From IMG/VR virus record IMGVR_UViG_3300019776_000324, positions 248,001 to 312,000 of that record: 64,000 bases of DNA; one strand, 5' to 3'. This document shows, in pieces, positions 963 to 64,000 of this stretch; positions within the stretch are counted from its first letter, which is position 1, and each line of letters starts with the position of its first letter. Both the position numbers and the translations under genes were made by a program. A model generated the notes under the pieces. That model had not been told where the DNA came from and did no database searches. It was given only the letters and a program-made list of their open reading frames with translations.

Positions 963-981
963 AATACCCAAAACACCTTAA

Positions 982-1017: not shown

Positions 1018-1019
1018 CT

Positions 1020-2483: not shown

Positions 2484-2492
2484 GAGAAATAA

Positions 2493-4712: not shown

Positions 4713-4714
4713 TA

Positions 4715-7240: not shown

Positions 7241-7253
7241 ATTAGGATAACTT

Positions 7254-8141: not shown

Positions 8142-8146
8142 ATCGT

Positions 8147-8175
8147 TTGACTTTTAGATGGATGTGCTGTACAAT
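8147..8175 (+). promoter_or_regulatory. sigma70-type promoter TTGACT-17-TACAAT
   Basis: Near-consensus with 17-nt spacer, 6 nt before ATG 8182. Confidence 0.7.
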
Positions 8176-8181
8176 TACAGT

Positions 8182-8406
8182 ATGGAACATCCATTAATAC
8201 CCAATCTTGACAGTTTAACTGAACAAGAACTACTTGATAAAATTTCAGAACTAAATCGAAAACTTAGTATTGCCTACGGAACTGGCAATGCTTATCTTTG
8301 CAATCAACTAAGAATGGCTATTGAAAGTTTTCAAACCAAATATCGAGAAAAGATCCGTGGTGGCGACAATGGCAATAACTTTGATGATGTGATTGATATT
8401 TCATGA
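8182..8406 (+). CDS. Hypothetical protein
   Basis: ORF track; start reassigned to MEHPLIP downstream of promoter; ATGA overlap with next gene. Confidence 0.7.
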   Translation: MEHPLIPNLDSLTEQELLDKISELNRKLSIAYGTGNAYLCNQLRMAIESFQTKYREKIRGGDNGNNFDDVIDIS

Positions 8407-42074: not shown

Positions 42075-44732
42075 TTGAGTTATATAGATGCACTATTTGA
42101 TCGTGAACACGATCGTATTCATGTTGTAGAACGACGAGATGGAAAGAGATGTTATCAAGAATATCCAGCCAACTATGTGTTCTACTACGAAGACCCTCGC
42201 GGTAAATTCCAAAGTATTTTTAACACACCTGTAAGTAGATTCTCTACTCGCAACAACAAAGAATTTCGCAAAGAGATTCGCATACAGTCAGGCAAGCAAT
42301 TATACGAGTCGGATATCAATCCAATCTTTCGTTGCCTAGAAGAAAACTACAAAGGACAAGACGGTCCTAAATTAAATGTAGCGTTCTTCGACATTGAGGT
42401 GGACTTTGATCCTGATCGCGGATTTAGTCCACCAAGTGATCCGTTCAATGCTATCACTGCTATTTCAGTTTACTTGCAGTGGTTAGATCAGCTAGTCACT
42501 CTAGTAGTTCCACCCAAACATATGAGCACAGAAACTGCTCAGGAAATTGCCAGCGAGTTTGAAAACACCATTATCTTCCAAGACGAAGGTGAAATGTTAA
42601 AAACATTCCTGGACTTGATTGAAGATGCTGATGCACTGTCAGGTTGGAACAGTGAAGGCTTCGATATTCCGTACACAGTTAATCGTGTTACTCGTGTGTT
42701 AAGCAAAGACGACACACGGCGCTTCTGCTTGTGGAATCAATATCCTAAAAAGCGTATGTTTGAACGCTTTGGTAACGAACAAGAAACATATGACTTGATT
42801 GGCCGTGTGCATATGGACTATATGCAACTGTATCGCAAATACACATATGAAGAGCGTCATAGTTATAGCTTGGATGCTATTCTTGAATACGAAGGTCTGG
42901 AAGGCAAGACCAAGTTTGAAGGCACACTGGATCAGCTTTACAATCAAAACTTCAAGACATTTATTGAGTATAACCGACAAGACGTTAACGGGTTGGCACA
43001 GATGGATAAGAAGTTAAAGTTCTTGGATCTTGCCAATACACTGGCGCATGAAAACACAGTGTTGCTACAGACTACCATGGGTGCTGTGGCTGTAACAGAA
43101 CAGGCTATTATTAATGAAGCACACGAGCGTGGCATGGTTGTTCCAAACCGTAAGGAACGCTATTCGGATGAAGACACTCAAGCGGCGGGTGCGTATGTTG
43201 CGTATCCACGCAAGGGCGTTCATGAATATGTCGGGTCGATAGACATTAACTCACTGTACCCTAGTGCGATTCGTGCGCTTAACATGGGACCTGAAACTAT
43301 TGTTGGTCAACTTCGACCAGTAATGACTGATCGCTATATTGCTGACAAGATGCGTAGCGGTAGTAGTTTTGCTGCGGCATGGGAAGGCTTGTTTGGTTCA
43401 TTGGAATTCACAGCAGTAATGGAAATGCAAACAGGCACAGAAATTACTATTGATTGGCAAGGCGGAGAAGAATCAGTTCACAGTGCCGCAGAAGTATGGA
43501 AGATTATCTTTGACAGTAATCAACCTTGGATGATCAGTGCCAACGGAACAATCTTTACCTATGAGCGTGAAGGTGTTATTCCCGGACTATTAAAACGCTG
43601 GTATGCCGAGCGTAAAGAAATGCAGGCTAAACTTAAACAATGTACAACGGCAGAAGATGAAGAATACTGGGATAAACGACAACTCGTTAAAAAGATTAAC
43701 CTTAATAGTTTGTATGGCGCAATTCTTAACCCTGGTTGCCGCTTTTTTGATAAGCGCATTGGACAATCTACCACACTAACTGGTCGTGCTATTGCCAAGC
43801 ATATGGATGCGTATGTAAACGAATGTATTACAGGCAAGTATGACCATGTGGGCGAATCAATCATCTATGGTGATACTGACTCTTGTTACTTTACTGCTTG
43901 GCCTGCTGTCAAGGAAGCAGTAGAGAAGGGCGAGATGGAATGGTCTAAAGATATTGCTGTCCAACTTTACAACAGTATAGCTGATCAAGTCAATGCTAGT
44001 TTCCCAGGATTTATGGAACAGTCATTCCATGTGCCTAGAGAGATGGGCAGTGTGATTAAAGGTGGCCGCGAGATTGTAGCAAGCAAAGGCTTGTTTATTA
44101 CCAAGAAGCGTTATGCTGTCCTGTATTATGACAAAGAAAACAAGCGTGTGGACACACATGGCGAACCAGGCAAAGTAAAAGCCATGGGCTTGGACTTGAA
44201 GCGTAGTGATACTCCTAAGGTTATTCAAGAATTCTTAAGCGAGATCTTAAACGATGTACTGACTGGTAAAACTCGTGAAGAAATCATTGAAAAGATTCGA
44301 AACTTTAAATATGAATTCAAAGAGCGACCAGGTTGGGAGAAGGGTAGTCCCAAGCGTGTAAACAACTTGACCAAGTATGGCAAGGAAGAAGAACGCCTAG
44401 GTAAAGCCAATATGCCAGGACATGTCCGTGCTGCACTTAACTGGAATAATTTGCGTAGAATGAACAGCGACAAGTATAGTTTACAAATTGTTGATGGAAT
44501 GAAAACTATTGTATGTAAACTAAAGCAAAATCCCCTGGGTTGGACCAGCATAGGCTATCCTACAGATGAATTGCATTTACCACAGTGGTTCAAAGAATTA
44601 CCATTTGACGATAGTGAAATGGAAGCAACAGTGGTTGATCAAAAATTAGACAACTTATTAGGTGTGCTAGAATGGGATTTAAAGTCGGCCACTAATACTG
44701 AAAACACCTTCCAAAGTTTATTCGAGTTCTAA
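42075..44732 (+). CDS. polB: Family B DNA polymerase (T4 gp43-like)
   Basis: Exo FDIE, GWN..FDIPY, YN.QDV; Pol DINSLYPS, K...NSLYG, YGDTDS, KKRY; TTG start. Confidence 0.97.
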   Translation: MSYIDALFDREHDRIHVVERRDGKRCYQEYPANYVFYYEDPRGKFQSIFNTPVSRFSTRNNKEFRKEIRIQSGKQLYESDINPIFRCLEENYKGQDGPKLNVAFFDIEVDFDPDRGFSPPSDPFNAITAISVYLQWLDQLVTLVVPPKHMSTETAQEIASEFENTIIFQDEGEMLKTFLDLIEDADALSGWNSEGFDIPYTVNRVTRVLSKDDTRRFCLWNQYPKKRMFERFGNEQETYDLIGRVHMDYMQLYRKYTYEERHSYSLDAILEYEGLEGKTKFEGTLDQLYNQNFKTFIEYNRQDVNGLAQMDKKLKFLDLANTLAHENTVLLQTTMGAVAVTEQAIINEAHERGMVVPNRKERYSDEDTQAAGAYVAYPRKGVHEYVGSIDINSLYPSAIRALNMGPETIVGQLRPVMTDRYIADKMRSGSSFAAAWEGLFGSLEFTAVMEMQTGTEITIDWQGGEESVHSAAEVWKIIFDSNQPWMISANGTIFTYEREGVIPGLLKRWYAERKEMQAKLKQCTTAEDEEYWDKRQLVKKINLNSLYGAILNPGCRFFDKRIGQSTTLTGRAIAKHMDAYVNECITGKYDHVGESIIYGDTDSCYFTAWPAVKEAVEKGEMEWSKDIAVQLYNSIADQVNASFPGFMEQSFHVPREMGSVIKGGREIVASKGLFITKKRYAVLYYDKENKRVDTHGEPGKVKAMGLDLKRSDTPKVIQEFLSEILNDVLTGKTREEIIEKIRNFKYEFKERPGWEKGSPKRVNNLTKYGKEEERLGKANMPGHVRAALNWNNLRRMNSDKYSLQIVDGMKTIVCKLKQNPLGWTSIGYPTDELHLPQWFKELPFDDSEMEATVVDQKLDNLLGVLEWDLKSATNTENTFQSLFEF

Positions 44733-46454: not shown

Positions 46455-47075
46455 ATGGGGGCTCCTTATACTATCCTGGATCACATTCAACTTGACTGTG
46501 ATTCAGCTACTGACATTGTTGTTGAAATTGGTAGCGAAAATGGAGAGGGGAGCAGTCGATGGTTATATCAGTGGTCTAGTAACCGTGATGTAAAATTTTA
46601 TAGTATAGATGTAGAGCACAGTGAAAGAGAAATAAGTTATCCAGAAATACCTTGGGTAGTATCGGAATCTGGATCATTGTGGTGTAAAAACATATTACCA
46701 ACTCTAAATAAAGCTATTAAAGTATTATACTTAGATAATTTTGATTACATGTACAACACTAACAACCCATCGGTATTGGAACAGTATGCTCGTCAAGTAA
46801 CCTTGTATGCGCAACGAGGAGTAGTTATGAATAATCAAAATTGCATGGAAGAACATCGATTACAAGTTGAATATTGTTTACCGTACATGGCAGAACAATC
46901 TGTAATTATAATGGATGATACTTATTATGACCCAGCATTAGAATTTCAACCAGCAAACGAACTTCCACAATGGTATGGTAAATGTGCTACTGCTATGCCA
47001 CTAATGATCGAAGCTGGATATTCTATAATTAGAGACCAAGAACACAATATAAATTATGCCATTAAATCAAGATAA
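46455..47075 (+). CDS. Class I SAM-dependent methyltransferase-like protein
   Basis: IVVEIGS..G.GS, FYSID, LYLD, IIMDDT. Confidence 0.65.
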   Translation: MGAPYTILDHIQLDCDSATDIVVEIGSENGEGSSRWLYQWSSNRDVKFYSIDVEHSEREISYPEIPWVVSESGSLWCKNILPTLNKAIKVLYLDNFDYMYNTNNPSVLEQYARQVTLYAQRGVVMNNQNCMEEHRLQVEYCLPYMAEQSVIIMDDTYYDPALEFQPANELPQWYGKCATAMPLMIEAGYSIIRDQEHNINYAIKSR

Positions 47076-48693
47076 CTTAACAGCCAAACAAAACGATTAC
47101 GCTGTATTCTTACCAGCTATCAGTGGCTTCTATGCTACTTTTGTCGGTAAACAACGAGATCCAGTAAATGGACCTTATGTAGATCCAGCTCGCTTGCCAG
47201 CTGGCATTCCGGACATGGAAATGCTTAACTGGCTTAATCCACAGAAAGGTATGTTTCCGTACAAGTGGTCTTTGTACTCAGGCGGACATGCTAACTTAGA
47301 TCTTAACAAACAAGACTGGTCCGAAGACATGGTTCGCAATCGCGATCCGGGTTCAGTTATCCTTGGCGACTCGGGTGGATTCCAGATTGCTAAAGGCTTG
47401 TGGGAAGGTGACTGGAAGGCTAACAGTGGTTGTCCTAAAGCGCAGAAGAAGCGTGATGCTGTACTTAAATGGTTAGATGGTGTTGCTGACTATGGCATGA
47501 TTCTTGATATTCCAACTTGGGTTATCCACGATAAGAAAGCCAGTGCCGCTTGTCAAATTACCACACTTCAAGAAGCTGTGGACGCTACCAAGTACAACAA
47601 CGACTACTTTATGAAGCATCGCAAAGGTGTTAAGAATGGTGGTGCCAAGTTCTTAAATGTTTTACAAGGTGCTAATCATGCTGACGCAGATCGTTGGTAT
47701 GAAACAATGAAACACTATTGTGATCCTAAAGTATATCCAGACACACATTTTAATGGCTGGTCCATGGGTGGTCAGAACATGTGTGATGTACACTTGGTAC
47801 TTCGTCGGTTGGTAGCACTTAGACACGATGGCTTGCTACAAGAAGGTGTTCACGATTGGATGCACTTCTTGGGCACAAGCAAACTAGAGTGGGCAGTATT
47901 ATTAACAGACATTCAACGAGCTGTTCGCAAATATGTTAATCCTGCATTTACTATTAGTTTTGACTGCGCTAGTCCATTCTTAGCCACAGCTAACGGACAA
48001 GTATATCATCATATTGACTTGCCACACAATGACAAGTGGTGTTATCGAATGAGTCCTATTGTGGACGATAAGAAATATGCCACAGACACTCGTCCATATG
48101 GTCCTACAGTAGTTCAAGAAGGCTATGTTGATCACTTTGATGAAAGTCCAATCAGCCGAGAGCTTAAGATGAAAGACATTTGCATCTATAAAGCAGGTGT
48201 TCGTAAAACTGATGCTGAACTAAACGGAGAAACATTTGATCCCAACAACATGAATCATTTCCATGTTGCTCCAGACTTAAACAAAATTGGTAAGAATGGC
48301 AAGACATCATGGGATAGTTTCAGTTATGCATTGTTAATGGGCCATAATGTTTGGATGCACTTGGAAGCAGTACAACGAGCCAACCGTGAATACGATGCTG
48401 GATCTTGGCCCAAGATGATGTGGAACGAAAACGGTGACCATGCCCGCTTTAAAGACATTGTGGATGCTATCTTTGCCACATCTGATCGTGCAGAAGCTGA
48501 AGCTATCATTGAACACTATGATCGCTATTGGATGGACATTGTTGGTACTCGTGGATTCAAAGGCAAGAAAGCCAAGAACGCACACAGTCAGTTTAATGCC
48601 TTGTTTGAAGTTGATGACAATGACGGAGTCGACGGCGACGAAGTGGAATTTGATGAGTCAAAACTGGATCACTTGGGAGACCAAATTGTTTAA
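47056..48693 (+). CDS. TGT-fold guanine transglycosylase (DpdA/Tgt-like)
   Basis: DSGGFQ, MILD, VLQG, SMGG, HFLG, SFDCASP, HN motifs colinear with tRNA-guanine transglycosylase. Confidence 0.8.
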   Translation: MPLNQDNLTAKQNDYAVFLPAISGFYATFVGKQRDPVNGPYVDPARLPAGIPDMEMLNWLNPQKGMFPYKWSLYSGGHANLDLNKQDWSEDMVRNRDPGSVILGDSGGFQIAKGLWEGDWKANSGCPKAQKKRDAVLKWLDGVADYGMILDIPTWVIHDKKASAACQITTLQEAVDATKYNNDYFMKHRKGVKNGGAKFLNVLQGANHADADRWYETMKHYCDPKVYPDTHFNGWSMGGQNMCDVHLVLRRLVALRHDGLLQEGVHDWMHFLGTSKLEWAVLLTDIQRAVRKYVNPAFTISFDCASPFLATANGQVYHHIDLPHNDKWCYRMSPIVDDKKYATDTRPYGPTVVQEGYVDHFDESPISRELKMKDICIYKAGVRKTDAELNGETFDPNNMNHFHVAPDLNKIGKNGKTSWDSFSYALLMGHNVWMHLEAVQRANREYDAGSWPKMMWNENGDHARFKDIVDAIFATSDRAEAEAIIEHYDRYWMDIVGTRGFKGKKAKNAHSQFNALFEVDDNDGVDGDEVEFDESKLDHLGDQIV

Positions 48694-49048
48694 TCCAATT
48701 TTTATTCCGTTGGTGTTGTTGTTTATTAAACATTGGTATGTTGATTTTGTCAATCAAACACAGGACGAAATTGACAGCAAAGGTACCTACGGTGGACTGG
48801 ATGGCATGTCACACAGTGCCAAACACGGATTAGGAACTATATTTGTATTTTTATTAGTAGGATTAGATCCAGCACTATCTGTAACACTAGGTGCAATTGA
48901 TATGGTTGTACACTATCACATCGATTGGATCAAAATGCGGTTTGGTACTCGTGATGTTGCTACTAAGGAATTTTGGAACCAATTAGGGTTAGATCAGTTA
49001 GCACACGCTCTAACCTATATTGGACTTGTTTGGTTATTATGGATATAA
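48686..49048 (+). CDS. DUF3307-like membrane protein
   Basis: H..VDF..Q, H..KH, HYHID..K, G.DQ..H; start estimated. Confidence 0.7.
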   Translation: MFNPIFIPLVLLFIKHWYVDFVNQTQDEIDSKGTYGGLDGMSHSAKHGLGTIFVFLLVGLDPALSVTLGAIDMVVHYHIDWIKMRFGTRDVATKEFWNQLGLDQLAHALTYIGLVWLLWI

Positions 49049-49050
49049 AA

Positions 49051-49257
49051 ATGATTGATAAATTACAGCACAGACTCAACCACTTAGAAAACGATCATGC
49101 TGCACTTAACAAGCGTATTGACGGAATGGAATCAACTGGTGTCTTTGAAGATGCTACCTTAGAGGTTTTGAAGAAGCAAAGGTTGCATTTGAAGGACGAA
49201 ATCTCTAAAATAAAACTTCAACTTGCATACGAAGCTGGACAACAGGAAAACGATTAA
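49051..49257 (+). CDS. DUF465/YdcH-like coiled-coil protein
   Basis: L...H..L...I ... LKKQRL.LKDEI. Confidence 0.7.
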   Translation: MIDKLQHRLNHLENDHAALNKRIDGMESTGVFEDATLEVLKKQRLHLKDEISKIKLQLAYEAGQQEND

Positions 49258-49790
49258 TGATTAGAGATGGGCACGATGATGTAAGTTTCTTTGTAGGAAC
49301 TGAAGTAGAACACACTCCTGCATTTGGACAAATTACATTATTTGTAGTAGGCTTACAGTCTATAGCAGATATTAAGAACGCACTTAAGACACACCGTGCT
49401 CTAGGCGGATACCTTGTTACCCATATATATTTTGGTGCTAACCAAAGTTTTCCTAACCCAGAATATAGTGATGCTCCTACCTGGCGTGATTGGGAAGGAA
49501 TGATTAATACATTCTTGCAAGACGGATACTTATGCACACTTGATATTGATGTAAAGTGTGTAGAAGGCCTGCTTGAATCTCCGTTGGTGGAATACCACAA
49601 CTTTATTCCAATGATTTCTATTAAACTCCCTTATATTAACCAACTTGGATACAATGCAACTATTAAACTTGATGACAAAGATTTTAAAGCAACCAACCCG
49701 GGCGTCTGGTGCCACTCGCTACACAGCTTACAAAAGCGCGAGGTGTTTACTGACTGGTCTAAATACACAAAGGACGAAGTAATTAAATGA
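49257..49790 (+). CDS. Hypothetical protein in the deazaguanine cluster
   Basis: 177-aa ORF coupled to the T-fold gene; HIYFGANQSF, TNPGVWCH. Confidence 0.7.
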   Translation: MIRDGHDDVSFFVGTEVEHTPAFGQITLFVVGLQSIADIKNALKTHRALGGYLVTHIYFGANQSFPNPEYSDAPTWRDWEGMINTFLQDGYLCTLDIDVKCVEGLLESPLVEYHNFIPMISIKLPYINQLGYNATIKLDDKDFKATNPGVWCHSLHSLQKREVFTDWSKYTKDEVIK

Positions 49791-50251
49791 TACAAGAACA
49801 ACGAGAAACAATAGAGAGAATTAAATCCGCAGCCAATCGTAAGATATGGGTTACTTTCCAGCGAGAAGGTATTCACTGCTATCCTGCGGCAGCAACAGAT
49901 CCTGCGTTAAATACTAACGATGAATACAATGTTGCGTTCCTTGCTAGCCCTCACCGTCATATCTTTCACTTTAGGGTGTCAATCAATGTCTTCCACAATG
50001 ACCGAGACATTGAGTTCATCCAGTTCAAACGCTGGCTCGAGAACTTATACAGTGGGACCGGTCCCTATAATGAAAATCGAGTTTTAGAACTCAACTACAA
50101 GTCCTGCGAAATGATTGCAGACGACTTGTACTTACAAATTGCAGGCCGCTATCCTGGTCGTGCTGTAGAAATCGAAGTGTCCGAAGACGGCGAGAACGGA
50201 TGCTTGATTAGTTATAACCTTACTCGTCCAACACAATCAATTGTAATTTAA
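49787..50251 (+). CDS. QueD-paralog T-fold protein (DpdL-like)
   Basis: GIH ... LASPHRHIF (LxxxHRHxF rather than CxxxHGH), IEF, SCE.IA, V.EDGENG. Confidence 0.7.
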   Translation: MIQEQRETIERIKSAANRKIWVTFQREGIHCYPAAATDPALNTNDEYNVAFLASPHRHIFHFRVSINVFHNDRDIEFIQFKRWLENLYSGTGPYNENRVLELNYKSCEMIADDLYLQIAGRYPGRAVEIEVSEDGENGCLISYNLTRPTQSIVI

Positions 50252-50263
50252 AAAGGAAATAAA

Positions 50264-50491
50264 ATGGGAAAGCCACAACATCGTGTAAACCCTAGAGCTT
50301 TGCAAGCATTGGAAGATTTGTCAAACTATTTGGAATTCTGTGTAGACTACGGTTACAGATATCGCGAAGAAGATTTGTATAACTTCAAAGCGTATGCTTG
50401 GCAACAGTACAACAAGTTTAGCCAGGGTAAAAATGCCAAGAACATGTGGGATGAAGATTCACGCAGATTCTCAGGATATCGCCGTGCGTAA
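50264..50491 (+). CDS. Hypothetical protein
   Basis: AGGA RBS; DL..YL.FC..YGY.Y.E.DLY. Confidence 0.65.
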   Translation: MGKPQHRVNPRALQALEDLSNYLEFCVDYGYRYREEDLYNFKAYAWQQYNKFSQGKNAKNMWDEDSRRFSGYRRA

Positions 50492-51689
50492 GTTATTCTA
50501 CATGGGCTTAGAGAGTTATGAGGCTCGCTATACCTTACAACTAACTGAATGGAATCGGCGTGTGTTTGATCGTCGCGGACTAGATGTGGTATATGTTCCA
50601 GGCCAAACCATTGACGACACTCAGGCTATCTGTGTAGGACAAGTATTAGATGCACATGGTCGTAGTTACTTTGGTATGAGTCAGATGATGAATCTGGTTC
50701 AAATGATGCGTAACGGAGAAGTTACCAGTGAAGATGTTATCTACTTCGAAGACATGTTCCAGCCTGGCATTGAAAGTTTGCCATACATCATGGATCAAGT
50801 TCCAGTAACACATCGTCCGCGTGTGTATGTACGCTGTCTAGCACAAGCTATTGACCCAGATGACTTTGTTCATGTATGGGGCATGCAAAAGTGGATGGAC
50901 TTGTACGAAAAGATGGTCAATGAGTTTGTTACAGGCGTACTAGCTACTAACGAAGAGATGGTAGCTCATATGCGTATTGCAGGCTGGTCGGCTCCAATTT
51001 ACAATATTAGTGGACTAGCATTTGGCAAAGAAGAAGTTCTAGAGCGTATAGGTGGCTCGCAAAATATTAAACCGTTTGACCAACGCAAGATGCGTGTGGG
51101 CTTTGCCGCTAGGTTTGACCAAGAGAAGCAACCAGACTTCTTTATGGACTTGATTGATATGTATCACGATCAGGGCAAACACAAGGATGTAGAGTTTGCT
51201 ATATTCCAAGGTGGCCCGTTGCGTAGTAACAATCAAAAGTATATCGATCGTGCTCGTCAGTTAGAGCGTGAAGGTAAACTTAAAATTTATGAGAACCTAA
51301 AGAAAAATGATTATTATAATCTCCTTAATGATACTCGTGTGCTTTTCAATTGCGCTTTACAAGACTGGGTATCAAACACAGTATCCGAAGCAGATACACT
51401 TGGATCGAATGTTCTATTTCCTGCTTATCGTTCTTTTCCTGAAACTTTCGCAGATGATCCTAACAGGCTTTACATTCCTTGGTCAATAGATGATGCTTAT
51501 CACAAGTTAGAAAACTTGCTAGGTGAACTACATCATAACACAGGACTTATTAGTGACTGGACCGATGGTACTGTGGATCGTGTTGTAGACATTTTAGAAG
51601 GCAAAGGCGAACAATGGAATCGTGCAGGTAATCGCTATCGTGATCATGTAAGCCAAGCCAAGTATCATGTAAGAAAGATCGAAGGATGA
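50484..51689 (+). CDS. GT-B fold glycosyltransferase
   Basis: F.ARFDQEKQP.F, Y..LL...RVL...ALQD.VS.TV.EA...G..VL.P..RSFPE; GTG start. Confidence 0.75.
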   Translation: MRKLFYMGLESYEARYTLQLTEWNRRVFDRRGLDVVYVPGQTIDDTQAICVGQVLDAHGRSYFGMSQMMNLVQMMRNGEVTSEDVIYFEDMFQPGIESLPYIMDQVPVTHRPRVYVRCLAQAIDPDDFVHVWGMQKWMDLYEKMVNEFVTGVLATNEEMVAHMRIAGWSAPIYNISGLAFGKEEVLERIGGSQNIKPFDQRKMRVGFAARFDQEKQPDFFMDLIDMYHDQGKHKDVEFAIFQGGPLRSNNQKYIDRARQLEREGKLKIYENLKKNDYYNLLNDTRVLFNCALQDWVSNTVSEADTLGSNVLFPAYRSFPETFADDPNRLYIPWSIDDAYHKLENLLGELHHNTGLISDWTDGTVDRVVDILEGKGEQWNRAGNRYRDHVSQAKYHVRKIEG

Positions 51690-52636
51690 GAGTAATAGTA
51701 ACTGGTGGTGCCGGCTATATTGGCGGCACAACTGTTCTTAAATTGCTTGATGCTGGACACAGTGTTTTGGCAATTGATCGTCAAATGCCTCCAAAACATT
51801 TAGTTGACTGTGGTGCTAAATGGCATACTGGTGACTTTTCTAGTGAAATTGGATTAGACTGTATAAGATTGTTTGCACCAGATGCTATTATACATTGTGC
51901 TGGTACTAGTTTAGTTGGACCCAGTATGACAAATCCTGGCGAGTACTACGACAATAATTTTGTTAAGACTTTAAGTATGGTTAACTATTTGGTTAACAAC
52001 AAGATGACTAACATTAGAGTTATTTTCAGTAGTAGTGCTGCAACTTATGGCAATCCAGTAATGACGCCTATACAAGAAGTTGATCCAACTGAACCAATCA
52101 GTCCATATGGTCAGAGCAAGCTCATGATTGACTGGATGTTGAGTAGCTATCGCAATGCTTACGGTCTGGACTTTGTAAGTTTTAGATACTTTAATGCTTG
52201 TGGTGCAGAGAGTCAAGCTAGAAATGGACAACTTCCTGGTGCCACGCATATTATTGCTAGAGTATTAGAAGCCATGCGAGATAAAAAACCATTTACTCTT
52301 AATGGCACAGACTATCCTACCAAAGACGGTACCTGTGTTCGAGACTACATTCATGTTGAAGATTTAGCATTGGCACATATTTTAGCAATTGATAAATCTA
52401 TTCCTAGTGACATTTATAATCTTGGCACTTCTGAGGGAACAAGCAATGCCGAAATTATTGACACAGCTAGAATTGTCACAGGACAGAAAATAGAAGTTGT
52501 AGTTGGACCGCAACGCCCAGGTGATCCTGCTATCCTTACTGCTGATGCTGGCAAGTTTATCAAGGTCAGCAATTGGCAACCACAATTCAAGTTAAATGAT
52601 ATTATTCAACATGCATGGGCTTGGTATAATAGATGA
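51686..52636 (+). CDS. galE: UDP-glucose 4-epimerase
   Basis: VTGGAGYIG, FSSSAATYG, YGQSK, RYFNA.G, DGTCVRDYIHV.DLA.AH, RPGDP. Confidence 0.92.
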   Translation: MRVIVTGGAGYIGGTTVLKLLDAGHSVLAIDRQMPPKHLVDCGAKWHTGDFSSEIGLDCIRLFAPDAIIHCAGTSLVGPSMTNPGEYYDNNFVKTLSMVNYLVNNKMTNIRVIFSSSAATYGNPVMTPIQEVDPTEPISPYGQSKLMIDWMLSSYRNAYGLDFVSFRYFNACGAESQARNGQLPGATHIIARVLEAMRDKKPFTLNGTDYPTKDGTCVRDYIHVEDLALAHILAIDKSIPSDIYNLGTSEGTSNAEIIDTARIVTGQKIEVVVGPQRPGDPAILTADAGKFIKVSNWQPQFKLNDIIQHAWAWYNR

Positions 52637-53223
52637 GCTTTCAAGCCTTATTTGATTTTGAATCTACTCTAGCTGAATATACCGGTGCACCATATGTTGT
52701 ATTAACAGATGGTTGCACCCATGCTCTTGAACTTTGTTTTAGACACGACAATATCAAACAAACAGCGTTTACTCCATATACCTATCTGAGTGTTCCTATG
52801 CTTATGCATCACTTGGGAATCAAATACGATTATCACACTCAAGAACATAGACAACAATGGGTCGGGGAATACAAGTTTGAAGGTACTCGTATTTGGGACA
52901 GTGCCCGCAGACTTGAGCGCAATATGTATCGCCCAGGACAGTTTCAATGTTTAAGTTTTGGTTGGTCTAAACCTTTGCAACTAGGCAAGGTTGGTGCTAT
53001 ACTGTTAGACGATGAGCTAGCATACAAAAAGTTCAGTCGACAACGAGCAGACGGTCGCGATCTACATGTTGCTTGGGAAACTGAAACAGACCTAATACTA
53101 GGTTATCATTACTGCCCAACATTAGAATTGTGTGCTAAGGGATTAGAATTGTTACCAACTGTAGAACCAAAATCACAACCTGGAGTTTATCCTGATTGCA
53201 GAAATATTTCATTTGCCTCTTGA
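52633..53223 (+). CDS. Short DegT/DnrJ/EryC1-like PLP-dependent aminotransferase
   Basis: FE..LAEY.GA.Y.V....CT.AL, IWDSA, CLSF...KPL..G..GAIL. Confidence 0.7.
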   Translation: MSFQALFDFESTLAEYTGAPYVVLTDGCTHALELCFRHDNIKQTAFTPYTYLSVPMLMHHLGIKYDYHTQEHRQQWVGEYKFEGTRIWDSARRLERNMYRPGQFQCLSFGWSKPLQLGKVGAILLDDELAYKKFSRQRADGRDLHVAWETETDLILGYHYCPTLELCAKGLELLPTVEPKSQPGVYPDCRNISFAS

Positions 53224-53293: not shown

Positions 53294-54091
53294 TTGACAA
53301 CATTTACATCAGAAGATCGAAACAACGCTACTAAACTAGTAGATGAAGCACCGTTCCATCCTGGATACGAAGATGCCGCAGTAAATCCTAACGAAAGCGG
53401 TCGTCCACTTAGCGTGGTAATTCGCGAACAAATGAAGCTTAGAGGCAAACGCTTTTGGGCAGGTGATAATGTATCTGAATACATTACACAAGAATCAGAC
53501 AAAGAAATGCTTATCAACGAAGCTACACAGGCTTTTGAAAAGGTATTAGACACCTTGTTGATTGATCGTGAAAATGATCCTAACAGTAAGGGCACAGCTC
53601 GTCGTTTGGCTAAGATGTATTATAATGAAATTATGGCAGGTAGATATGAGAAGGCACCAGATGCTACTGCTTTTCCAAATGATAGTGAGGATAGATATGA
53701 AGGTATGTTGGTTGTACGCAGTGAATTGCGTTCTATGTGTAGTCATCATCATCAGCCAGTTAGCGGGGTGGCCTATATTGGCATCATCGCAGCAAACAAA
53801 CTCATTGGTCTTAGCAAGTATACTCGCATTGCTCAATGGTGTGCTCGCCGTGGCACTTTACAAGAAGAGTTATGTAACGACATCGCAAGAGAAATAATGA
53901 AGGCTACAGATTCACAGAATGTTGGCGTGTATATTCAAGCAACACATGGTTGCTGTGAGAATCGCGGCATTATGGCACACAGTAGTTTAACACAAACTAC
54001 AGTACTTAAAGGTGTGTTCAACACAGATCCAGCAACTAAGAAAGAGTTTATGGACAATATTAAATTACAACAGGAGTTTGCCCCAAGATGA
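53294..54091 (+). CDS. folE: GTP cyclohydrolase I
   Basis: T..RLAKMY, SMCSHHHQP, IGLSK..RI, R..LQE, A.H.C...RG, EF; TTG start. Confidence 0.95.
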   Translation: MTTFTSEDRNNATKLVDEAPFHPGYEDAAVNPNESGRPLSVVIREQMKLRGKRFWAGDNVSEYITQESDKEMLINEATQAFEKVLDTLLIDRENDPNSKGTARRLAKMYYNEIMAGRYEKAPDATAFPNDSEDRYEGMLVVRSELRSMCSHHHQPVSGVAYIGIIAANKLIGLSKYTRIAQWCARRGTLQEELCNDIAREIMKATDSQNVGVYIQATHGCCENRGIMAHSSLTQTTVLKGVFNTDPATKKEFMDNIKLQQEFAPR

Positions 54092-54828: not shown

Positions 54829-54859
54829 ACTAGTATTGTTAATTAATCTAGGTTATACG

Positions 54860-57274
54860 ATGAAGCGGATTTTGCTTTTAGCAACAGTAGTTCTACAACT
54901 AGCGGCCTGTGCTGGTGGAGGTGGTGGAGGTGGCGCAAATAATCCTGGCGGTAGTGCTCCACCAACCCCAAGCAGTGGGCCAACTTATCTTCGATCAGAA
55001 GTACCCTTTTCAACTCCGACCAAGGTAGCTACAGTTGATCCATTGGTAGCTATTACAACTTCAGCCGCAGTGGTTGATACCTTTACTGCAAATATTTCTG
55101 GGTCAGGCGAAGATGTTATTATTGCCGGCCGTCAAACTCAACCAACTAGTATTGCCAATTGGAGCAATAGTAAAATTAGTATGCTAAGTTGGTCAAATGG
55201 TACATTGGTTGATCGAACAGCGCAATGGTTCACAGGAGACTCTAATGTAATACTAGGAGCAGATCCTAATATTAAATTTGCTGACTTCTTTAAGAGCGGG
55301 CGCACTGATATGTTTGTGGCACCTAGTACCGATGCACAAAATTATGGTCCAGCATACCTTTATCAAAATACAGGAACTACATTCAATCGCATTACAATTC
55401 CGTTGTCCAATGTATGGGGACACGATACTGCTGTAGCTGATTTAAATGGCGATGGATATAAGGATTTTGTAATTACCGACTATGGTCCTAATATGACTGT
55501 CGGTATCAATAACCGAGTTAACGGTTTTAAAACTTATACCTCTGCGTTTGGGCCTGGGCCTAGTGCCGCATCAGTTGCAGTTGCAGATTTTATGGGCAAC
55601 GGAACTACCACTATGGTATTAACTGATACCGACACTAATATTGCTAACAGCACAAAATTATACAAGTGGGCTATTGACGGCGCAGATCAATTAAAGTTTG
55701 ACATGGTCAGTGTATTGCCTGCTCCTAGGCCTGGTATTAATCATAATATTAGAAGTTTGGTGTATGACTTTGATTCAAGTGGCGCCAACAGCTTGTTAAT
55801 CTTTGGAACCAACACCGCAACAAAATATTCTGACATACAATTTTTAAAAAATAACGGAAGCGGAGCATTTACAGATGTTACAGATACTACTCTAGTAGGG
55901 TATAATCACAACACATACAGTAGCTACAATCCAAAAATTGTTGATGTCAATGGAGATGGATTAACTGACATTTTAGTTAGTGGACAGGACTTTTCTGGTA
56001 ATAACAACAGCACTCAAGTCTTGTTGCGTAGTCGAGATAACAAATATGTGGCGGCCTATCAAAATTTATTAACTGATTTTGCCACACAATCAAATCAAAT
56101 ACAAGGAACAGACAATTCCTCCAACACCGTAAATGTTGTAAAGGGGCCTAACGGAAAAATGTATCTGGTTACTGCTACTAGTTTTATGAATGGTGCAGAC
56201 CGTCAACTAGCAGTATATCTTAGTAATATCAGTGACTCAACTAGTGTAGTGACTCCAAAGTTGGCCTTGGACTTGATTAAATCCAAATGGCCATACATGA
56301 CTGATATTCAAGCCAACACTGCACTGGCCATGACTTCGTCTACATACATGACTAATGCAGGCACTGGGCTAGTAATCAATCCAGATTCATTGCTACAACC
56401 AATTGGGTCGTTGTCCTTGATGACACAAAATGGATTAACACCGATCAAAGGATATATTGCAGGTGCAGACATTGGTGACGGTAATACACTAGTGCTAGAT
56501 AGCATAGGGCGTGGGTTTACTACTAGTCTTAAAGCAATGAATGTATCTGGATTAAACAGTTTTGGTTATAACACCGAGCATGTTGACCAACACAACTTAA
56601 CTAGTCATGCAGAATATCTAGTCAACGGTAGTCCAATGACCTATGGTAACATGCGTATTGCTACTGAAAATCGTAATGCCTTGTTTGGTAACGATCAAGG
56701 TCCGGGTATGTTGCAGAAACCCACACAATATTCCATAGGTATTCCCGAAGCATACAGAAATGGTAAGTTTAGTTATGGTATGCAGTACACCAACTTGAAC
56801 ACCAATCCGTGGATAGCATTTGGTGGAGCATGGGGTAGCATTACTAATTCTGGTATTATGGATAATGTGGCCACTTACAAAGATGGTGGATTTAGTGCCC
56901 AGGCCAGCATGATGCATGTTACCACTAATGTTACTCCTGGATTGATTACTAAAGTTAATAATATAGTTGGTGGCTGGGCCGAAAGTGGTTATCGTTATAC
57001 TGAAGATCAGTTTGGTGATATTGGAGTTTATGCTGGTGTTAAGCCCGTGGTACTGTCAGGCAATGTTGAAGCAAGAATGCCAACTAGTGTTGACAGCGCA
57101 GGCAATATAGTGTACACTAACAAGAAATTAGCGATACAAAATCAAGTCACCCCTTATGTTAGAGCACTATATACTAACATGATCGATAAGAAGACCATGT
57201 ATCGTTTTAGTGTAATGGGTACACAGCAAGGTCAATATCGACTCATGCACGAACTTAGATTTTGGATAGATTAA
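54860..57274 (+). CDS. Large lipoprotein with FG-GAP/VCBS repeats and C-terminal beta-barrel-like domain
   Basis: MKRILLLATVVLQLAAC lipobox plus poly-Gly tether; ADLNGDGYKD, VDVNGDGLTD, F.D.T repeats; amphipathic beta strands ending LRFWID. Confidence 0.7.
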   Translation: MKRILLLATVVLQLAACAGGGGGGGANNPGGSAPPTPSSGPTYLRSEVPFSTPTKVATVDPLVAITTSAAVVDTFTANISGSGEDVIIAGRQTQPTSIANWSNSKISMLSWSNGTLVDRTAQWFTGDSNVILGADPNIKFADFFKSGRTDMFVAPSTDAQNYGPAYLYQNTGTTFNRITIPLSNVWGHDTAVADLNGDGYKDFVITDYGPNMTVGINNRVNGFKTYTSAFGPGPSAASVAVADFMGNGTTTMVLTDTDTNIANSTKLYKWAIDGADQLKFDMVSVLPAPRPGINHNIRSLVYDFDSSGANSLLIFGTNTATKYSDIQFLKNNGSGAFTDVTDTTLVGYNHNTYSSYNPKIVDVNGDGLTDILVSGQDFSGNNNSTQVLLRSRDNKYVAAYQNLLTDFATQSNQIQGTDNSSNTVNVVKGPNGKMYLVTATSFMNGADRQLAVYLSNISDSTSVVTPKLALDLIKSKWPYMTDIQANTALAMTSSTYMTNAGTGLVINPDSLLQPIGSLSLMTQNGLTPIKGYIAGADIGDGNTLVLDSIGRGFTTSLKAMNVSGLNSFGYNTEHVDQHNLTSHAEYLVNGSPMTYGNMRIATENRNALFGNDQGPGMLQKPTQYSIGIPEAYRNGKFSYGMQYTNLNTNPWIAFGGAWGSITNSGIMDNVATYKDGGFSAQASMMHVTTNVTPGLITKVNNIVGGWAESGYRYTEDQFGDIGVYAGVKPVVLSGNVEARMPTSVDSAGNIVYTNKKLAIQNQVTPYVRALYTNMIDKKTMYRFSVMGTQQGQYRLMHELRFWID

Positions 57275-57674: not shown

Positions 57675-58181
57675 ATGAACTACACCGGATCAAGACCTTA
57701 CAAATATACAAGTACTAAAGAATATCACGATGCATTTCCTTGCGCTTATCGTCAATGGAGAGCAGATAGTCACTGCAACTTGATTCATGGCTACTCATTT
57801 AGCATGAAGTTTTACTTTGGCACAGACGACTTAGATGTGCGTAACTGGGCTGCTGACTACGGCGGACTCAAAGAACTCAAAGGTATCCTTGAAAGTCAAT
57901 TTGATCATACCTTACTAGTAGCAGAAGATGATCCTGAACTAGAAACATACAAGTTATTACAAGAAAAGAATCTTGCTAAACTAACTATACTACCTAAGCT
58001 AGGTTGCGAAGGTCTAGCAGATCAATTGTACAAGTTTGTAAATGGTGTTTATATTCCAGACATGTGGGGTCAATCAGAAGCAGATCGCTTGTGGTGCTAT
58101 CGTGTGGAAGTTCGCGAAACAATGTCTAACATGGCATATCGCGAAGGACATCGTGAATGGAATGAAGATCTCTTCGAATAA
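57675..58181 (+). CDS. queD: 6-carboxy-5,6,7,8-tetrahydropterin synthase
   Basis: HCNLIHGY (CxxxHG), D.G.LK.LK, FDH.LL, GCE.LA, VEVRET. Confidence 0.88.
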   Translation: MNYTGSRPYKYTSTKEYHDAFPCAYRQWRADSHCNLIHGYSFSMKFYFGTDDLDVRNWAADYGGLKELKGILESQFDHTLLVAEDDPELETYKLLQEKNLAKLTILPKLGCEGLADQLYKFVNGVYIPDMWGQSEADRLWCYRVEVRETMSNMAYREGHREWNEDLFE

Positions 58182-59306: not shown

Positions 59307-59309
59307 CTT

Positions 59310-62365: not shown

Positions 62366-62902
62366 ATGAAAAAAGTATATTACACTTGGCAGGATGTTGA
62401 AAATCAAACACAAGAAATTCTGCGTCAACTACAGCGTGATGCATGGATGCCCGATTATGTTGTAGGGCTTACTAGAGGCGGACTTGTTCCAGCTAATCTT
62501 ATTAGCCAATACTTAGAAGTGCCAATGGAAACACTCAAAGTAAGCCTGCGTGACGATGCTAGCCAACCCGAATCAAACTTATGGATGGCCGAAGATGCAT
62601 ACGGTCATGTAGATTATGATCCAATGTCAGGTGGTGATGGGCGTCAAAAGATTCTTATTGTAGACGACATCAATGATTCGGGTGCTACACTTAATTGGAT
62701 TAAACAAGACTGGATGAGTAGTTGTATGCCTGGCGATCTAGAACGCTGGAATCATGTATGGAACGATAATGTTCGTGTTGCTGTACTAGTTGATAACGAA
62801 GCCAGCGCCAGTGAATTAAATGTTAGATATTCAGCCATTGACCTAAATAAAGCTGAAGAAGATTGTTGGATTGTGTTTCCTTGGGAAGATTGGTGGAAGT
62901 GA
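62366..62902 (+). CDS. Purine phosphoribosyltransferase (Gpt-like)
   Basis: VVGLTRGGLVPA, LIVDDINDSGAT PRPP loop, WIVFPWE. Confidence 0.9.
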   Translation: MKKVYYTWQDVENQTQEILRQLQRDAWMPDYVVGLTRGGLVPANLISQYLEVPMETLKVSLRDDASQPESNLWMAEDAYGHVDYDPMSGGDGRQKILIVDDINDSGATLNWIKQDWMSSCMPGDLERWNHVWNDNVRVAVLVDNEASASELNVRYSAIDLNKAEEDCWIVFPWEDWWK

Positions 62903-63579: not shown

Positions 63580-63587
63580 ATACTATT

Positions 63588-63794
63588 ATGAACATATACT
63601 ATAGAGAATCAACATTGTTAGAACAAATAAATGATGCTATTAGCGACTGCGCTACTAGTAAAAAGCACATTGACTATTTTGAATTAACCAGCGAAGAACT
63701 TGCTTCTAATTGGACCAGTTTTGATAGAACCACAAATAATGGTATCGATGTTAGATATTCCTATAAAGGTATTCCTATAAAGGTTAAAGAATGA
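63588..63794 (+). CDS. Hypothetical protein
   Basis: TAAATA 5 nt before ATG; ATGA overlap with queE. Confidence 0.6.
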
Positions 63795-64000
63795 AAATTA
63801 AAGTATCAGAATTATTTTATAGTTTACAAGGCGAAGGTCGCTTTGTTGGTGTGCCAAGTGTGTTCTTGCGTACATATGGATGTAACTTTAAGTGTGCAGG
63901 CTTTGGTTGCAAGCCAGGCGAAAAGTCAACAGGCGCAGATGAAGTTGCTAAAGAAGTCAGCAAGTATGATACATTCTTAAGTTTGCCATTGGTTGAAACT
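63791..64000 (+). CDS. queE: 7-carboxy-7-deazaguanine synthase QueE (radical SAM), truncated by window end
   Basis: [32 protein letters not shown]. Confidence 0.85.

Follow-up and report, generated by a model that had tools for sequence, protein, structure and literature searches.

A DpdL-family gene in a tight operon with a predicted glycosyltransferase in a 344-kb phage: a putative module for a sugar-bearing 7-deazaguanine in phage DNA

The DNA region analysed here (hereafter, the window) is a stretch of 64,000 nucleotides, corresponding to positions 248,001 to 312,000 of the virus record IMGVR_UViG_3300019776_000324, which derives from a phage genome of 344 kb. At positions 49257-51689 the window carries four translationally coupled genes, encoding a protein of 177 aa (g177), a 154-aa protein with the motif LASPHRHIF, a small protein of 75 aa (g75) and a glycosyltransferase (GT) of the GT-B type, followed by a gene for a GalE-type epimerase. 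The features of the region are collected in Table 1.

Table 1. Genes of the DpdL locus and of the surrounding region (window coordinates).
Position	Strand	Predicted product	Observations
47056..48693	+	545-aa TGT/DpdA-like protein, presumed DNA guanine transglycosylase	No Pfam, PHROG or NCBIfam hit; PA5oct EST35_0316 homologue at 2.5e-108; present in 75/80 related loci
48973..49257	+	94-aa DUF465 protein, variable and probably not part of the module	PF04325 at 2.6e-14; found in only 13/80 related loci
49257..49790	+	g177, 177 aa, unnamed family, unassigned alpha/beta fold	No family hit; just upstream of DpdL in 78/80 related loci
49787..50251	+	DpdL-family protein, 154 aa, proposed 7-carboxy-7-deazaguanine decarboxylase	phrog_17812 at 1e-33; no Pfam hit
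50264..50491	+	g75, 75 aa, basic (pI 9.1), function unknown	In 43/44 related loci with enough downstream sequence, with both GT types; no homologue in cultured phages
50484..51689	+	DpdL-associated GT-B glycosyltransferase, 401 aa from GTG, GT4-like retaining type, long subtype	Glycos_transf_1 (PF00534) at 21.8 bits, below the cutoff of 26.4
51686..52636	+	GalE-type UDP-hexose 4-epimerase	PF01370 (Epimerase) at 6e-52; phrog_540 at 7e-68
52633..53223	+	196-aa miniature DegT/DnrJ/EryC1-like protein, role not established	PF01041 at 2e-8, residues 8-62 only; next to FolE in 38/44 related loci; coding-type substitution pattern
53294..54091	+	FolE, GTP cyclohydrolase I	NCBIfam FolE at 7e-41
57675..58181	+	Phage-type QueD-like CPH4 synthase (CxxxHGY)	PF01242 at 6e-13; phrog_2389 at 1e-34
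62366..62902	+	Phosphoribosyltransferase (PRT) linked to DpdL phages	PF00156 at 7e-16; only cultured-phage homologues in the phiST group and BUCT-ZZ01, all DpdL-positive (6/6)
63791..64000	+	Start of QueE (7-carboxy-7-deazaguanine synthase)	Runs past the window end to genome position 312648; aligns with phage QueE proteins; weak Radical_SAM hit

An earlier note, based on the sequence alone, had pointed to this cluster as a second QueD-like protein linked to two unknown ORFs and a glycosyltransferase, and this observation was confirmed, since all the listed ORFs exist. The junctions show tight coupling: g177 and the 154-aa gene share ATGA, the 154-aa gene and g75 are 12 nt apart with an AAGGAAA ribosome-binding site, and the GT and GalE genes share ATGA. 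The start of the GT gene, however, had to be corrected: the longest ORF extends from ATG 50394 (431 aa), but the homologues all begin MRKLFY, and the gene therefore most likely starts at GTG 50484, overlapping the g75 stop by 8 nt and not by about 100 nt. All four genes are real coding genes, as across 54-78 homologues third codon positions differ about twice as often as first and second positions (0.55-0.58 against 0.25-0.35).

The 154-aa protein belongs to the DpdL family. The motif at residues 52-60 is exactly the LxxxHRHxF sequence which, in the paper defining DpdL (Hutinet/Cui et al., NAR 2023; PMC10516641), replaces the CxxxHGH of QueD. Alignment with the DpdL proteins studied in that work, which had been indicated in advance as a way to verify the assignment, showed by tblastn 52% identity (8e-37) to ASD50405 of Acidovorax phage ACP17 and 32.5% identity (2e-8) to CGPG_00067 of Cellulophaga phage phiST. 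The family comprises 2112 representatives, with H30, H56, R57, H58, F60, S106, C107, E108, E133 and D134 conserved, and the motif is present in 108 of the 150 representatives that were listed. In the alignment with E. coli QueD, the zinc histidines (HxH) and the two glutamates are retained, while the catalytic Cys27 is replaced by Leu and no equivalent of the Asp70-His71 pair is found; hence, although ancestry is shared, this protein is not a QueD. With regard to the QueD-like T-fold, hhalign against a QueD profile gave 87% probability (E 4e-6) over the C-terminal 46 columns only, 45 of the 100 nearest ESM-Atlas clusters carry PF01242, and a family model aligned to such a cluster at TM 0.87; with no structure of the protein itself predicted here, these data do not settle its fold in either direction. 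Profile searches of PDB sequences with the DpdL, g177 and 545-aa protein alignments returned only spurious hits (bacterioferritin, designed repeat proteins) or nothing.

The genomic context is that expected for DpdL, as the genome encodes FolE, a QueD-like protein, QueE and a DpdA-like protein, while the search for QueC retrieved NadE as the only PP-loop hit (NAD_synthase, 1e-48). The gene at 57675, referred to in the earlier note as a true QueD, encodes a divergent phage type with CxxxHGY and not a canonical CxxxHGH enzyme. The 545-aa protein contains LGDSGGFQ (residues 103-110) and SFDCASP (301-307), which resemble the two catalytic-Asp motifs of TGT, its nearest Atlas clusters with a family carry PF01702 TGT (score 0.93) or PF23859 DpdA (0.89), and the structural neighbours of its own family are TGT/DpdA models. 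On the other hand, PF01702 does not hit anywhere in the genome and a PDB profile search found nothing, so that by family models alone its membership is left undecided. The window protein shares with the DpdL proteins of phiST and ACP17 the same conserved His and Glu residues as well as the motif, and those phages have the same context of FolE, QueD, QueE and DpdA-like genes without QueC. Compared with this locus, phiST uses a short DpdA3 of 259 aa and has no GT, g177 or GalE near DpdL.

The GT model (pLDDT 76) showed the two-Rossmann-domain GT-B fold, with Foldseek matches at 4e-11 to MshA, GlgM, BshA and PimB' (TM 0.65 to MshA) and, in a second fold search (VIA), Z scores of 24.9-22 to GT4 enzymes, the best over 343 residues and including tetrahydrobiopterin (BH4) glucosyltransferases. 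The E-x7-E motif is present in short-type relatives, whereas the window protein has D-x7-E at the same place; together with the sub-threshold Pfam score, this does not decide formal assignment to Glycos_transf_1. Family-invariant residues include E..RYT near the N-terminus and R...EKQP, and the protein is 67% identical to UTS52032 of BUCT-ZZ01, which abuts the DpdL of that phage. A relationship to the T4 alpha-glucosyltransferase, suspected from the N-terminal GLE..RYT stretch, was not supported, since neither of the T4 alpha- and beta-glucosyltransferases appears among the 50 best matches of either search.

To assess whether the four-gene unit is conserved, a survey that the earlier note had also called for, we compared cultured phages and related metagenomic loci. 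All 18 cultured-phage records with a full-length hit to the GT family are among the 29 DpdL-positive records out of 50,697. The GT usually lies beside DpdL and a long DpdA: it lies within about 3 kb of DpdL, directly abutting it in BUCT-ZZ01, Phosso, PA5oct and ACP17, and also in X1 and BCSR5. Of the 44 related loci with enough downstream sequence, 33 have the long GT type, 11 the short type and none lacks it, and GalE accompanies the long form (31/33) and never the short form (0/11). The same link was observed in further independent contigs (numbered L103, L104, L106, L109 and L111). These counts are inflated by relatedness and represent roughly a dozen independent lineages, not 18 plus 44. 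In addition, about half of the DpdL lineages lack the GT within the sequence examined (phiST, RHph_I1_18, Bakedbeans, D479, Ahp1, and contigs L105 and L107). The GT and g177 are not lineage-specific tailoring extras, but widespread partners of DpdL and DpdA.

In cultured phages g177 occurs only in DpdL-positive records (13/13, the PA5oct group and ACP17). Contig L103 encodes a g177-DpdL fusion followed by the GT with overlapping stop and start codons, and a related family of ~143 aa precedes the GT in X1, BCSR5, L106, L109 and L111. The g177 model (pLDDT 86) gave a best PDB Z of 6.4, which is not significant. Shape searches repeatedly listed QueE (TM 0.57; Z 5.3-5.7), but these scores are within background, profile-profile comparison by hhalign gave 0.3% probability and no CxxxCxxC-type motif is present in the sequence; a degenerate QueE was therefore rejected as unsupported. 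A complex prediction for DpdL plus g177 scored 0.00, reported as no answer, which counts neither for nor against a physical interaction. In other lineages DpdL is fused to different partners: seven DpdL cluster representatives carry an N-terminal domain with the two PIG-L/LmbE signature motifs of sugar-deacetylase type, although statistical support is weak (Pfam E 0.0016-0.007; PDB 1uan E 0.5), and in one case (P0190) DpdL is fused to a Vut_1/YhhQ-type transporter domain. The window phage itself has no PIG-L-like domain.

All together, these data are best explained by a DpdA-DpdL-g177-glycosyltransferase module that makes a glycosylated 7-deazaguanine DNA base, a reading that we consider about as likely as not. 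In this view, FolE, the QueD-like protein and QueE would make 7-carboxy-7-deazaguanine (CDG), at which the pathway would stop in the absence of QueC. DpdL, as a QueD-derived protein with a probable T-fold, keeping the three zinc histidines and the two base-binding glutamates, would convert CDG to the base that goes into DNA, according to the published proposal by decarboxylation to 7-deazaguanine, and probably works with g177. The 545-aa DpdA-like protein, the presumed transglycosylase, would exchange guanine in phage DNA for this base, and the GT would add a hexose to the deazaguanine, or do so beforehand on the free base, with GalE most likely supplying UDP-galactose in this phage and g75 possibly assisting. 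The resulting sugar-bearing 7-deazaguanine would shield the DNA from host nucleases. The family memberships, the gene order and the co-occurrence come directly from our analysis, while every catalytic step, the acceptor atom, the sugar and whether glycosylation precedes or follows insertion are inferred.

The interpretation offered by the earlier note is thus partly supported. The motif it gave for DpdL and the DpdL assignment were right, and the idea that the neighbours belong to the pathway, with GalE feeding the GT, is strongly backed by co-occurrence. CDG decarboxylation by DpdL, instead, is itself only a proposal that has not been demonstrated for any member, heterologous expression having failed in the defining paper, and neither this activity, nor dDG in the DNA, nor the donor and acceptor of the GT was measured here. 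Nothing here shows what the GT glycosylates, and the evidence on its sugar donor and acceptor is only indirect, through the co-variation of GalE with the long subtype. Against the favoured reading, no chemistry is available for any GT-positive phage, about half of the DpdL lineages lack the GT within the sequence examined, and 7-deazaguanine has no hydroxyl, so that the acceptor would have to be N2, O6 or, for CDG, the carboxylate. The GT is also acidic (pI 5.4), as are most invariant residues of its N-terminal domain, which looks less like a DNA-binding enzyme and more like one acting on a base or small molecule. Expression of dpdL plus dpdA of ACP17 alone gave no dDG (PMC10516641), which fits a need for the partners ASD50402 (g177-like) and ASD50404 (GT) lying beside them, and PA5oct, which has the module, has restriction-resistant DNA with a modified G of unknown chemistry (PMC12191111).

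Known systems offer partial parallels. The proposed logic is that of the T4 enzymes acting on 5-hydroxymethylcytosine DNA, in which a phage GT-B enzyme decorates a modified base with a hexose from a UDP-sugar to block host nucleases, but here the GT family differs, the base is a purine analogue without a hydroxymethyl group and activity on DNA is not shown. A GT4 enzyme plus a PIG-L deacetylase is the logic of MshA/MshB and BshA/BshB, whose acceptors are inositol phosphate or malate; MshA and BshA are the best structural matches of the GT. GT-B enzymes placing a sugar on a 7-deazapurine base or on a pterin are HuiG of huimycin biosynthesis (preprint 10.64898/2026.04.15.718813) and cyanobacterial tetrahydrobiopterin glucosyltransferase (5zes, 9v0l); they belong to secondary or pterin metabolism, and the Z of 22.4 to the latter is no higher than for many other GT4 enzymes and indicates no specific relationship. 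The word 'glycosyl' does not occur in the published work on DpdL, and literature searches for a glycosylated deazaguanine, or for any follow-up on DpdL, found nothing, which, with most subscription journals outside their reach, does not prove that no such report exists.

Alternative scenarios were considered. It is possible, although unlikely, that the phage makes plain 2'-deoxy-7-deazaguanine, as does phiST, which has DpdL and dDG without this GT, and that the GT, GalE and the other sugar genes merely sit in the same early-gene region and build a glycan for virion proteins or the host envelope. Indeed, the nearest structural relatives of the GT are general GT4 enzymes, jumbo phages often carry glycan genes, and the window holds further sugar genes at 58488-61567; its other sugar-nucleotide genes, a 4,6-dehydratase and a C-methyltransferase, could serve a non-DNA glycan. 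However, the GT sits between DpdA and DpdL in PA5oct and ACP17 and immediately upstream of DpdA and DpdL in X1, with no other annotated sugar gene nearby in any of the three, and the restriction of the full-length family to DpdL-positive cultured phages, as well as the arrangement in L103, also speak against this view. The nearest GT outside the family, in PhiXhv-12, matches only from residue 83 and lies in a GlmS/PIG-L context, and the partial hits in PhiXhv and Ep026 phages belong to a different, BshA-like context.

An equally unlikely alternative is that the GT acts on a free small molecule, such as CDG, 7-deazaguanine, a nucleotide made by the linked PRT or a pterin intermediate, the sugar being a transient handle or an end product that does not stay in DNA (a deacetylated GlcNAc in lineages with the PIG-L-like domain). 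Close structural matches have small acceptors (MshA, BshA, SenB, LmbT and BH4 glucosyltransferase), HuiG glycosylates a free 7-deazapurine, and the GT is acidic, as are most invariant residues of its N-terminal domain. A PRT-FolE fusion in L105 and a Vut_1 gene in the L104 module, besides the PRT and transporter-domain links described above, point in the same direction. By contrast, the GT stays adjacent to the DNA transglycosylase gene across lineages, a phage has no obvious use for a free glycosylated metabolite, and a base glycosylated before insertion would still end up in DNA, merging this reading with the favoured one. Finally, we rejected as very unlikely a split QueD, in which DpdL is not a decarboxylase but complements the QueD-like protein to form the CPH4 synthase. 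The residue losses are complementary, since the QueD-like protein keeps the Cys but has Tyr at the positions of E. coli QueD His16 and His33, thus lacking two of the three zinc histidines. Nevertheless, the same QueD-like subfamily occurs in 105 cultured-phage records, many of which lack DpdL and have QueC or proven preQ0/preQ1-type modifications, for example phiSM, immuto_2-6A and vB_Ade_ART (PMC10516641), and it therefore works without DpdL; in solved QueD structures the Cys and the zinc ligands of one active site come from one chain, and L104 has DpdL with no QueD nearby.

A broader hypothesis, which we hold only tentatively, is that a large and widespread group of phages replaces guanine with a glycosylated 7-deazaguanine through this four-part module. 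The group would include this abundant 340-kb environmental lineage, the PA5oct/Paride group of Pseudomonas aeruginosa jumbo phages, ACP17, X1, BCSR5, Phosso and a cyanophage, with a sugar varying by lineage, galactose where GalE is present and deacetylated GlcNAc where a PIG-L-like domain is fused to DpdL. To our knowledge, this would be the first sugar-bearing purine analogue in any DNA, and it would also explain why DpdL plus DpdA alone were inactive in E. coli.

In conclusion, 7-deazaguanine DNA modifications are a current frontier in phage counter-defence, and DpdL, for which the only attempt at reconstitution failed, is their least understood step. While DpdL was already described, the new finding is that in about half of the DpdL lineages the gene travels with a dedicated glycosyltransferase and a second unknown protein, to which it is sometimes fused. 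This provides a concrete reason for the failed reconstitution, namely missing partners, and a testable prediction of a new class of DNA hypermodification in cultured phages, including the therapeutic candidate PA5oct. It would also matter for sequencing and restriction analysis of such phages, and for understanding the modification-sensing nucleases that target them.

In the 344,244-bp virus record to which the window belongs, which carries direct terminal repeats and is a jumbo phage from a metagenome, almost all genes of the window are located on the + strand, and the genes under study lie downstream of a family-B DNA polymerase and of a clamp-like gene. The four ORFs listed in the earlier note exist as described, so that the observation held. 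Analysis of the gene junctions shows one tightly coupled unit: the gene for the 177-aa protein (g177) and that for the 154-aa protein share ATGA, the gene for the 75-aa protein (g75) has its own AAGGAAA ribosome-binding site 12 nt after the preceding stop, and the glycosyltransferase (GT) and GalE genes also share ATGA, as do GalE and the next gene. The homologues of the GT all start with MRKLFY, which in the window corresponds to GTG 50484, 8 nt before the g75 stop, and the gene therefore encodes 401 aa and is not the longest ORF from 50394. In addition, across 54-78 homologues each, g75, g177, the DegT-like gene and the GT all show about twice as many differences at third codon positions as at first and second positions, indicating that even the 75-aa ORF is a real gene. 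The positions of the features discussed here are collected in the table below.

Positions of the features discussed in the text
Feature	Sequence	Position
Window	virus record	248001-312000
Radical_SAM match	window	12035-13195
Radical_SAM match	window	40936-41985
Family-B DNA polymerase	window	42075-44732
Methyltransferase-like ORF (206 aa)	window	46455-47075
DpdA-like protein (545 aa)	window	47056-48693
GT (401 aa)	window	50484-51689
DegT/DnrJ/EryC1-like protein (196 aa)	window	52633-53223
FolE	window	53294-54091
812-aa protein with FG-GAP repeats	window	54836-57274
QueD-like protein	window	57675-58181
Second sugar-nucleotide block	window	58488-62334
NDP-hexose 4,6-dehydratase-type gene	window	59310-60359
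Sugar C-methyltransferase with a zinc-ribbon domain	window	60356-61567
Phosphoribosyltransferase	window	62366-62902
Gene between phosphoribosyltransferase and QueE	window	62863-63579
Gene between phosphoribosyltransferase and QueE	window	63513-63794
QueE	window	starts at 63791, runs past the window end
DpdA545-like, GT, Vut_1/YhhQ-like and DpdL genes	L104 (contig)	591-8396
GT region of Synechococcus phage BUCT-ZZ01	L002	7007-8536
PAPS-reductase-like protein in X1 and in the two lineages with PIG-L-like-DpdL fusions	L097; L109; L111	4843-5376; 7411-8004; 7493-8008

The paper that named DpdL defines it as a QueD paralogue in which CxxxHGH has become LxxxHRHxF, occurring in phages that encode DpdA, FolE, QueD and QueE but not QueC (PMC10516641). 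Alignment with characterised DpdL proteins had been set out beforehand as one test of the 154-aa protein, and its outcome is positive: the protein reads LASPHRHIF and, by tblastn, hits ACP17 ASD50405 (52% identity, 8e-37) and phiST CGPG_00067 (32.5%, 2e-8), the two proteins studied in that paper. The family is very large, with 2,112 representatives at 50% identity with E<=0.001, and more than 8,000 clusters at 90% identity resemble this protein. The conserved residues are H30, H56, R57, H58, F60, S106, C107, E108, E133 and D134. Specifically, an alignment with E. coli QueD shows that DpdL keeps the HxH zinc ligands and both glutamates, while it has Leu at the position of the catalytic Cys and lacks the Asp-His pair. 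Pfam PTPS does not hit the protein, a DpdL profile matches a QueD profile at E 4e-6 over the C-terminal part only, and no structure of DpdL itself was predicted, so that these data do not settle whether it has the QueD-like fold; 45 of the 100 nearest ESM-Atlas clusters carry PF01242.

FolE and a QueD-like gene are both present in the window, and QueE starts close to its end, whereas the only QueC-like match in the whole genome is a NadE (NAD_synthase 1e-48). The 545-aa DpdA-like protein hits no family model; it does carry DSGGFQ and FDC motifs like those of TGT, and in the ESM Atlas it is surrounded by clusters carrying TGT or DpdA domains, which, in the absence of a predicted structure for this protein, leaves its placement in either family undecided. 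The genome therefore fulfils the genomic definition of a DpdL phage. The QueD-like gene, called a true QueD in the earlier note, is a divergent phage type. Aligned to E. coli QueD, its product keeps the catalytic Cys, His31, Asp-His and both Glu, but it has Tyr at His16 and His33, two of the three zinc ligands (CxxxHGY), and its NCBIfam QueD score is 29 bits against a cutoff of 89. How it binds metal is unexplained. This subfamily occurs in 105 cultured-phage records, many of them without DpdL.

Further genes of possible relevance were observed in the same region. A phosphoribosyltransferase (PRT) gene lies two genes upstream of QueE, and its only cultured-phage homologues are in the phiST group and in BUCT-ZZ01, all DpdL-positive (6/6); in BUCT-ZZ01 it abuts QueE, and in L105, the contig of a distant DpdL representative, a PRT domain is fused to FolE next to DpdL. 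This hints at a nucleotide-level step, as in tubercidin biosynthesis. The 196-aa miniature DegT/DnrJ/EryC1-like protein matches the Pfam model only over residues 8-62, retains a possible SF..K lysine motif and is conserved next to FolE in 38/44 related loci, with both GT types, although it is too short for a normal sugar aminotransferase. Between the QueD-like gene and the PRT gene lies a second sugar-nucleotide block, which holds the 4,6-dehydratase-type gene, the C-methyltransferase and two unassigned ORFs; whether it feeds the same modification is open. An 812-aa protein with a lipoprotein-like N-terminus and FG-GAP repeats, encoded between FolE and the QueD-like gene, is present in only 10/80 related loci, and the 206-aa methyltransferase-like ORF (weak Methyltransf_24 match) just upstream of the DpdA-like gene has no counterpart in any of the 80 related loci. 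In addition, the 344-kb genome gives 15 matches to the Radical_SAM Pfam model, 11 of them above the cutoff and two in the window, an unusually large number for a phage.

As regards the GT, Pfam gives only a sub-threshold Glycos_transf_1 match. A model built on 32 homologues (pLDDT 76, pTM 0.79) is a clear GT-B fold of the GT4, retaining type, with matches to MshA, BshA, GlgM, PimB', SenB, LmbT, trehalose and sucrose-phosphate synthases and tetrahydrobiopterin glucosyltransferases (Foldseek 4e-11; Z 22-25), while T4 DNA glucosyltransferases are not among the best 50 matches. The protein is acidic (pI 5.4), and the invariant residues of its N-terminal (acceptor) domain are mostly Asp and Glu, plus an E..RYT motif. 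Neither UDP-Gal nor deazaguanine was docked into the model.

A survey of synteny around the four-gene unit, which had been named in advance as a way to examine its meaning, gave the key comparative result. A profile of this GT finds a member next to DpdL in Synechococcus phage BUCT-ZZ01, Sinorhizobium phage Phosso, Pseudomonas phage PA5oct, Acidovorax phage ACP17 and Xanthomonas phage X1, while in Burkholderia phage BCSR5 it lies 3 kb away. In PA5oct and ACP17 the order is DpdA-GT-DpdL, with no annotated sugar gene beside the trio. The GT of BUCT-ZZ01 is 67% identical to the window GT, with 68% nucleotide identity over 865 bases, whereas its DpdL is only 35% identical, which suggests recent transfer of the long-type GT between a cyanophage and this jumbo-phage lineage. 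Three tblastn searches with divergent members against 50,697 phage records returned 18 records with full-length matches, and all 18 are among the 29 DpdL-positive records. Five further records match only from residue 83; these belong to a BshA-like gene next to GlmS and a PIG-L deacetylase, with no DpdL hit in those phage records.

In 80 IMG/VR loci of the window's own lineage, the block polymerase - clamp - DpdA - g177 - DpdL - g75 - GT - (GalE) - DegT-like - FolE is conserved, with variable insertions. Of the 44 loci with at least 6 kb downstream of DpdL, 33 have the long (~400 aa) GT type, 11 have a short (~350 aa) type and none lacks it. GalE accompanies the long type in 31 of 33 loci and the short type in 0 of 11, and this is the best evidence that GalE feeds this enzyme. 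We then sampled the contigs of six distant DpdL representatives that yielded readable DNA: four of these, L104, L106, L109/L110 and L111, carry the GT family near DpdL, while two, L105 and L107, do not. About half of the DpdL lineages therefore have the GT, although no phylogeny-corrected co-occurrence test of DpdL, GT, g177 or the related ~143-aa protein, PIG-L-like domain, PRT and DpdA type over all about 2,000 DpdL representatives with their contigs was carried out, and phiST, the only DpdL phage with known chemistry (plain dDG), is in the other half. Contig L104, which has bacterial-looking genes (TctABC, sulfatase, LysR, two-component system), carries a DpdA545-like gene, the GT, a Vut_1/YhhQ-like gene and DpdL, but no FolE, QueD or QueE nearby, and may represent a cellular or prophage version of the module that salvages a deazaguanine precursor.

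The g177 protein has no family assignment, and its confident model (pLDDT 86) has no significant structural match, the best Z being 6.4, within background; QueE-like partial barrels recur at TM 0.57, but profile comparison with QueE is negative. The gene lies upstream of DpdL in 78 of 80 related loci. Its only cultured-phage homologues are in ACP17, next to the module, and in the eleven PA5oct-group records, 27 kb away from DpdL, and all of these are DpdL-positive. Contig L103 encodes a single 322-aa protein made of a g177-like part (1-172) and a DpdL part (192-320), followed with an overlapping start by a GT of the same family; that contig, however, is short and was seen in only one sample. 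In X1, BCSR5, L106, L109 and L111 a ~143-aa protein (p143) sits just before the GT. Its profile weakly matches g177 (hhalign E 4e-4, 35% probability) and also hits the ACP17 g177 homologue (E 0.0018), so that it is probably a distant relative. A complex prediction for DpdL plus g177 gave no answer and counts neither for nor against.

Other fusions of DpdL point the same way. Seven cluster representatives carry an N-terminal ~145-aa domain with the two signature motifs of PIG-L/LmbE deacetylases, PH-DDE-IGC and D-HP-H, although statistical support is weak (Pfam E 0.0016-0.007, and PDB 1uan E 0.5 but at both motifs). Two of these fusions were located, and both lie in modules with a PAPS-reductase-like gene, the 143-aa protein, the GT and a TGT-like gene. 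GT4 followed by PIG-L is the logic of mycothiol and bacillithiol synthesis. One representative is fused to a Vut_1/YhhQ-type domain, the family of the preQ0 transporter, and another to a dUTPase-like domain. In addition, a small PAPS-reductase-like (PP-loop) protein recurs next to DpdL or FolE in X1 and in the two lineages with PIG-L-like-DpdL fusions, and one DpdL representative (P0194) is fused to such a domain, whereas the window has no equivalent.

DpdL itself is already known, though unvalidated. The defining paper never mentions glycosyltransferases, and in the literature searched, to whose limits this statement is confined, that work alone uses the term DpdL and nothing relevant on glycosylated deazaguanine was found; the association of DpdL with a dedicated GT, g177/p143, GalE and PIG-L-like domains therefore appears unreported.

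Different explanations of these data were considered. The phage could make plain dDG, with the GT serving another glycan, or the GT could act on a free intermediate, with the sugar not remaining in DNA. The proposal that DpdL complements the His-poor QueD-like protein was instead rejected, because that QueD type is common in phages without DpdL. The analysis itself establishes the family memberships, within the limits stated for each protein, the operon structure and the co-occurrence, while the steps that follow are inferences. In this view, FolE, the QueD-like protein and QueE would give CDG; DpdL, probably with g177, would convert CDG to the base to be inserted, decarboxylation being the published proposal; the DpdA-like protein would insert it; and the GT would add a hexose, probably galactose in this phage. 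Our data do not discriminate whether the sugar goes on before or after insertion, or on which atom, but the acidic character of the GT and its small-molecule relatives favour a free base or a flipped-out base over general DNA binding.

The failure of dpdL plus dpdA from ACP17 to give dDG in E. coli (PMC10516641) fits this picture, since the ACP17 genes for the g177 homologue and the GT lie beside them and were left out. PA5oct DNA resists several restriction enzymes with G in their sites, and the nature of its modified G is unknown (PMC12191111). The interpretation put forward in the earlier note, namely a DpdL acting on CDG with the neighbouring genes as tailoring steps and GalE as the source of the sugar, is supported in part. 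In conclusion, the 154-aa protein is almost certainly a DpdL, the module very likely serves deazaguanine DNA modification and the GT is probably a functional part of it, while it is possible, but no more than an even prospect, that the final DNA base carries a sugar.
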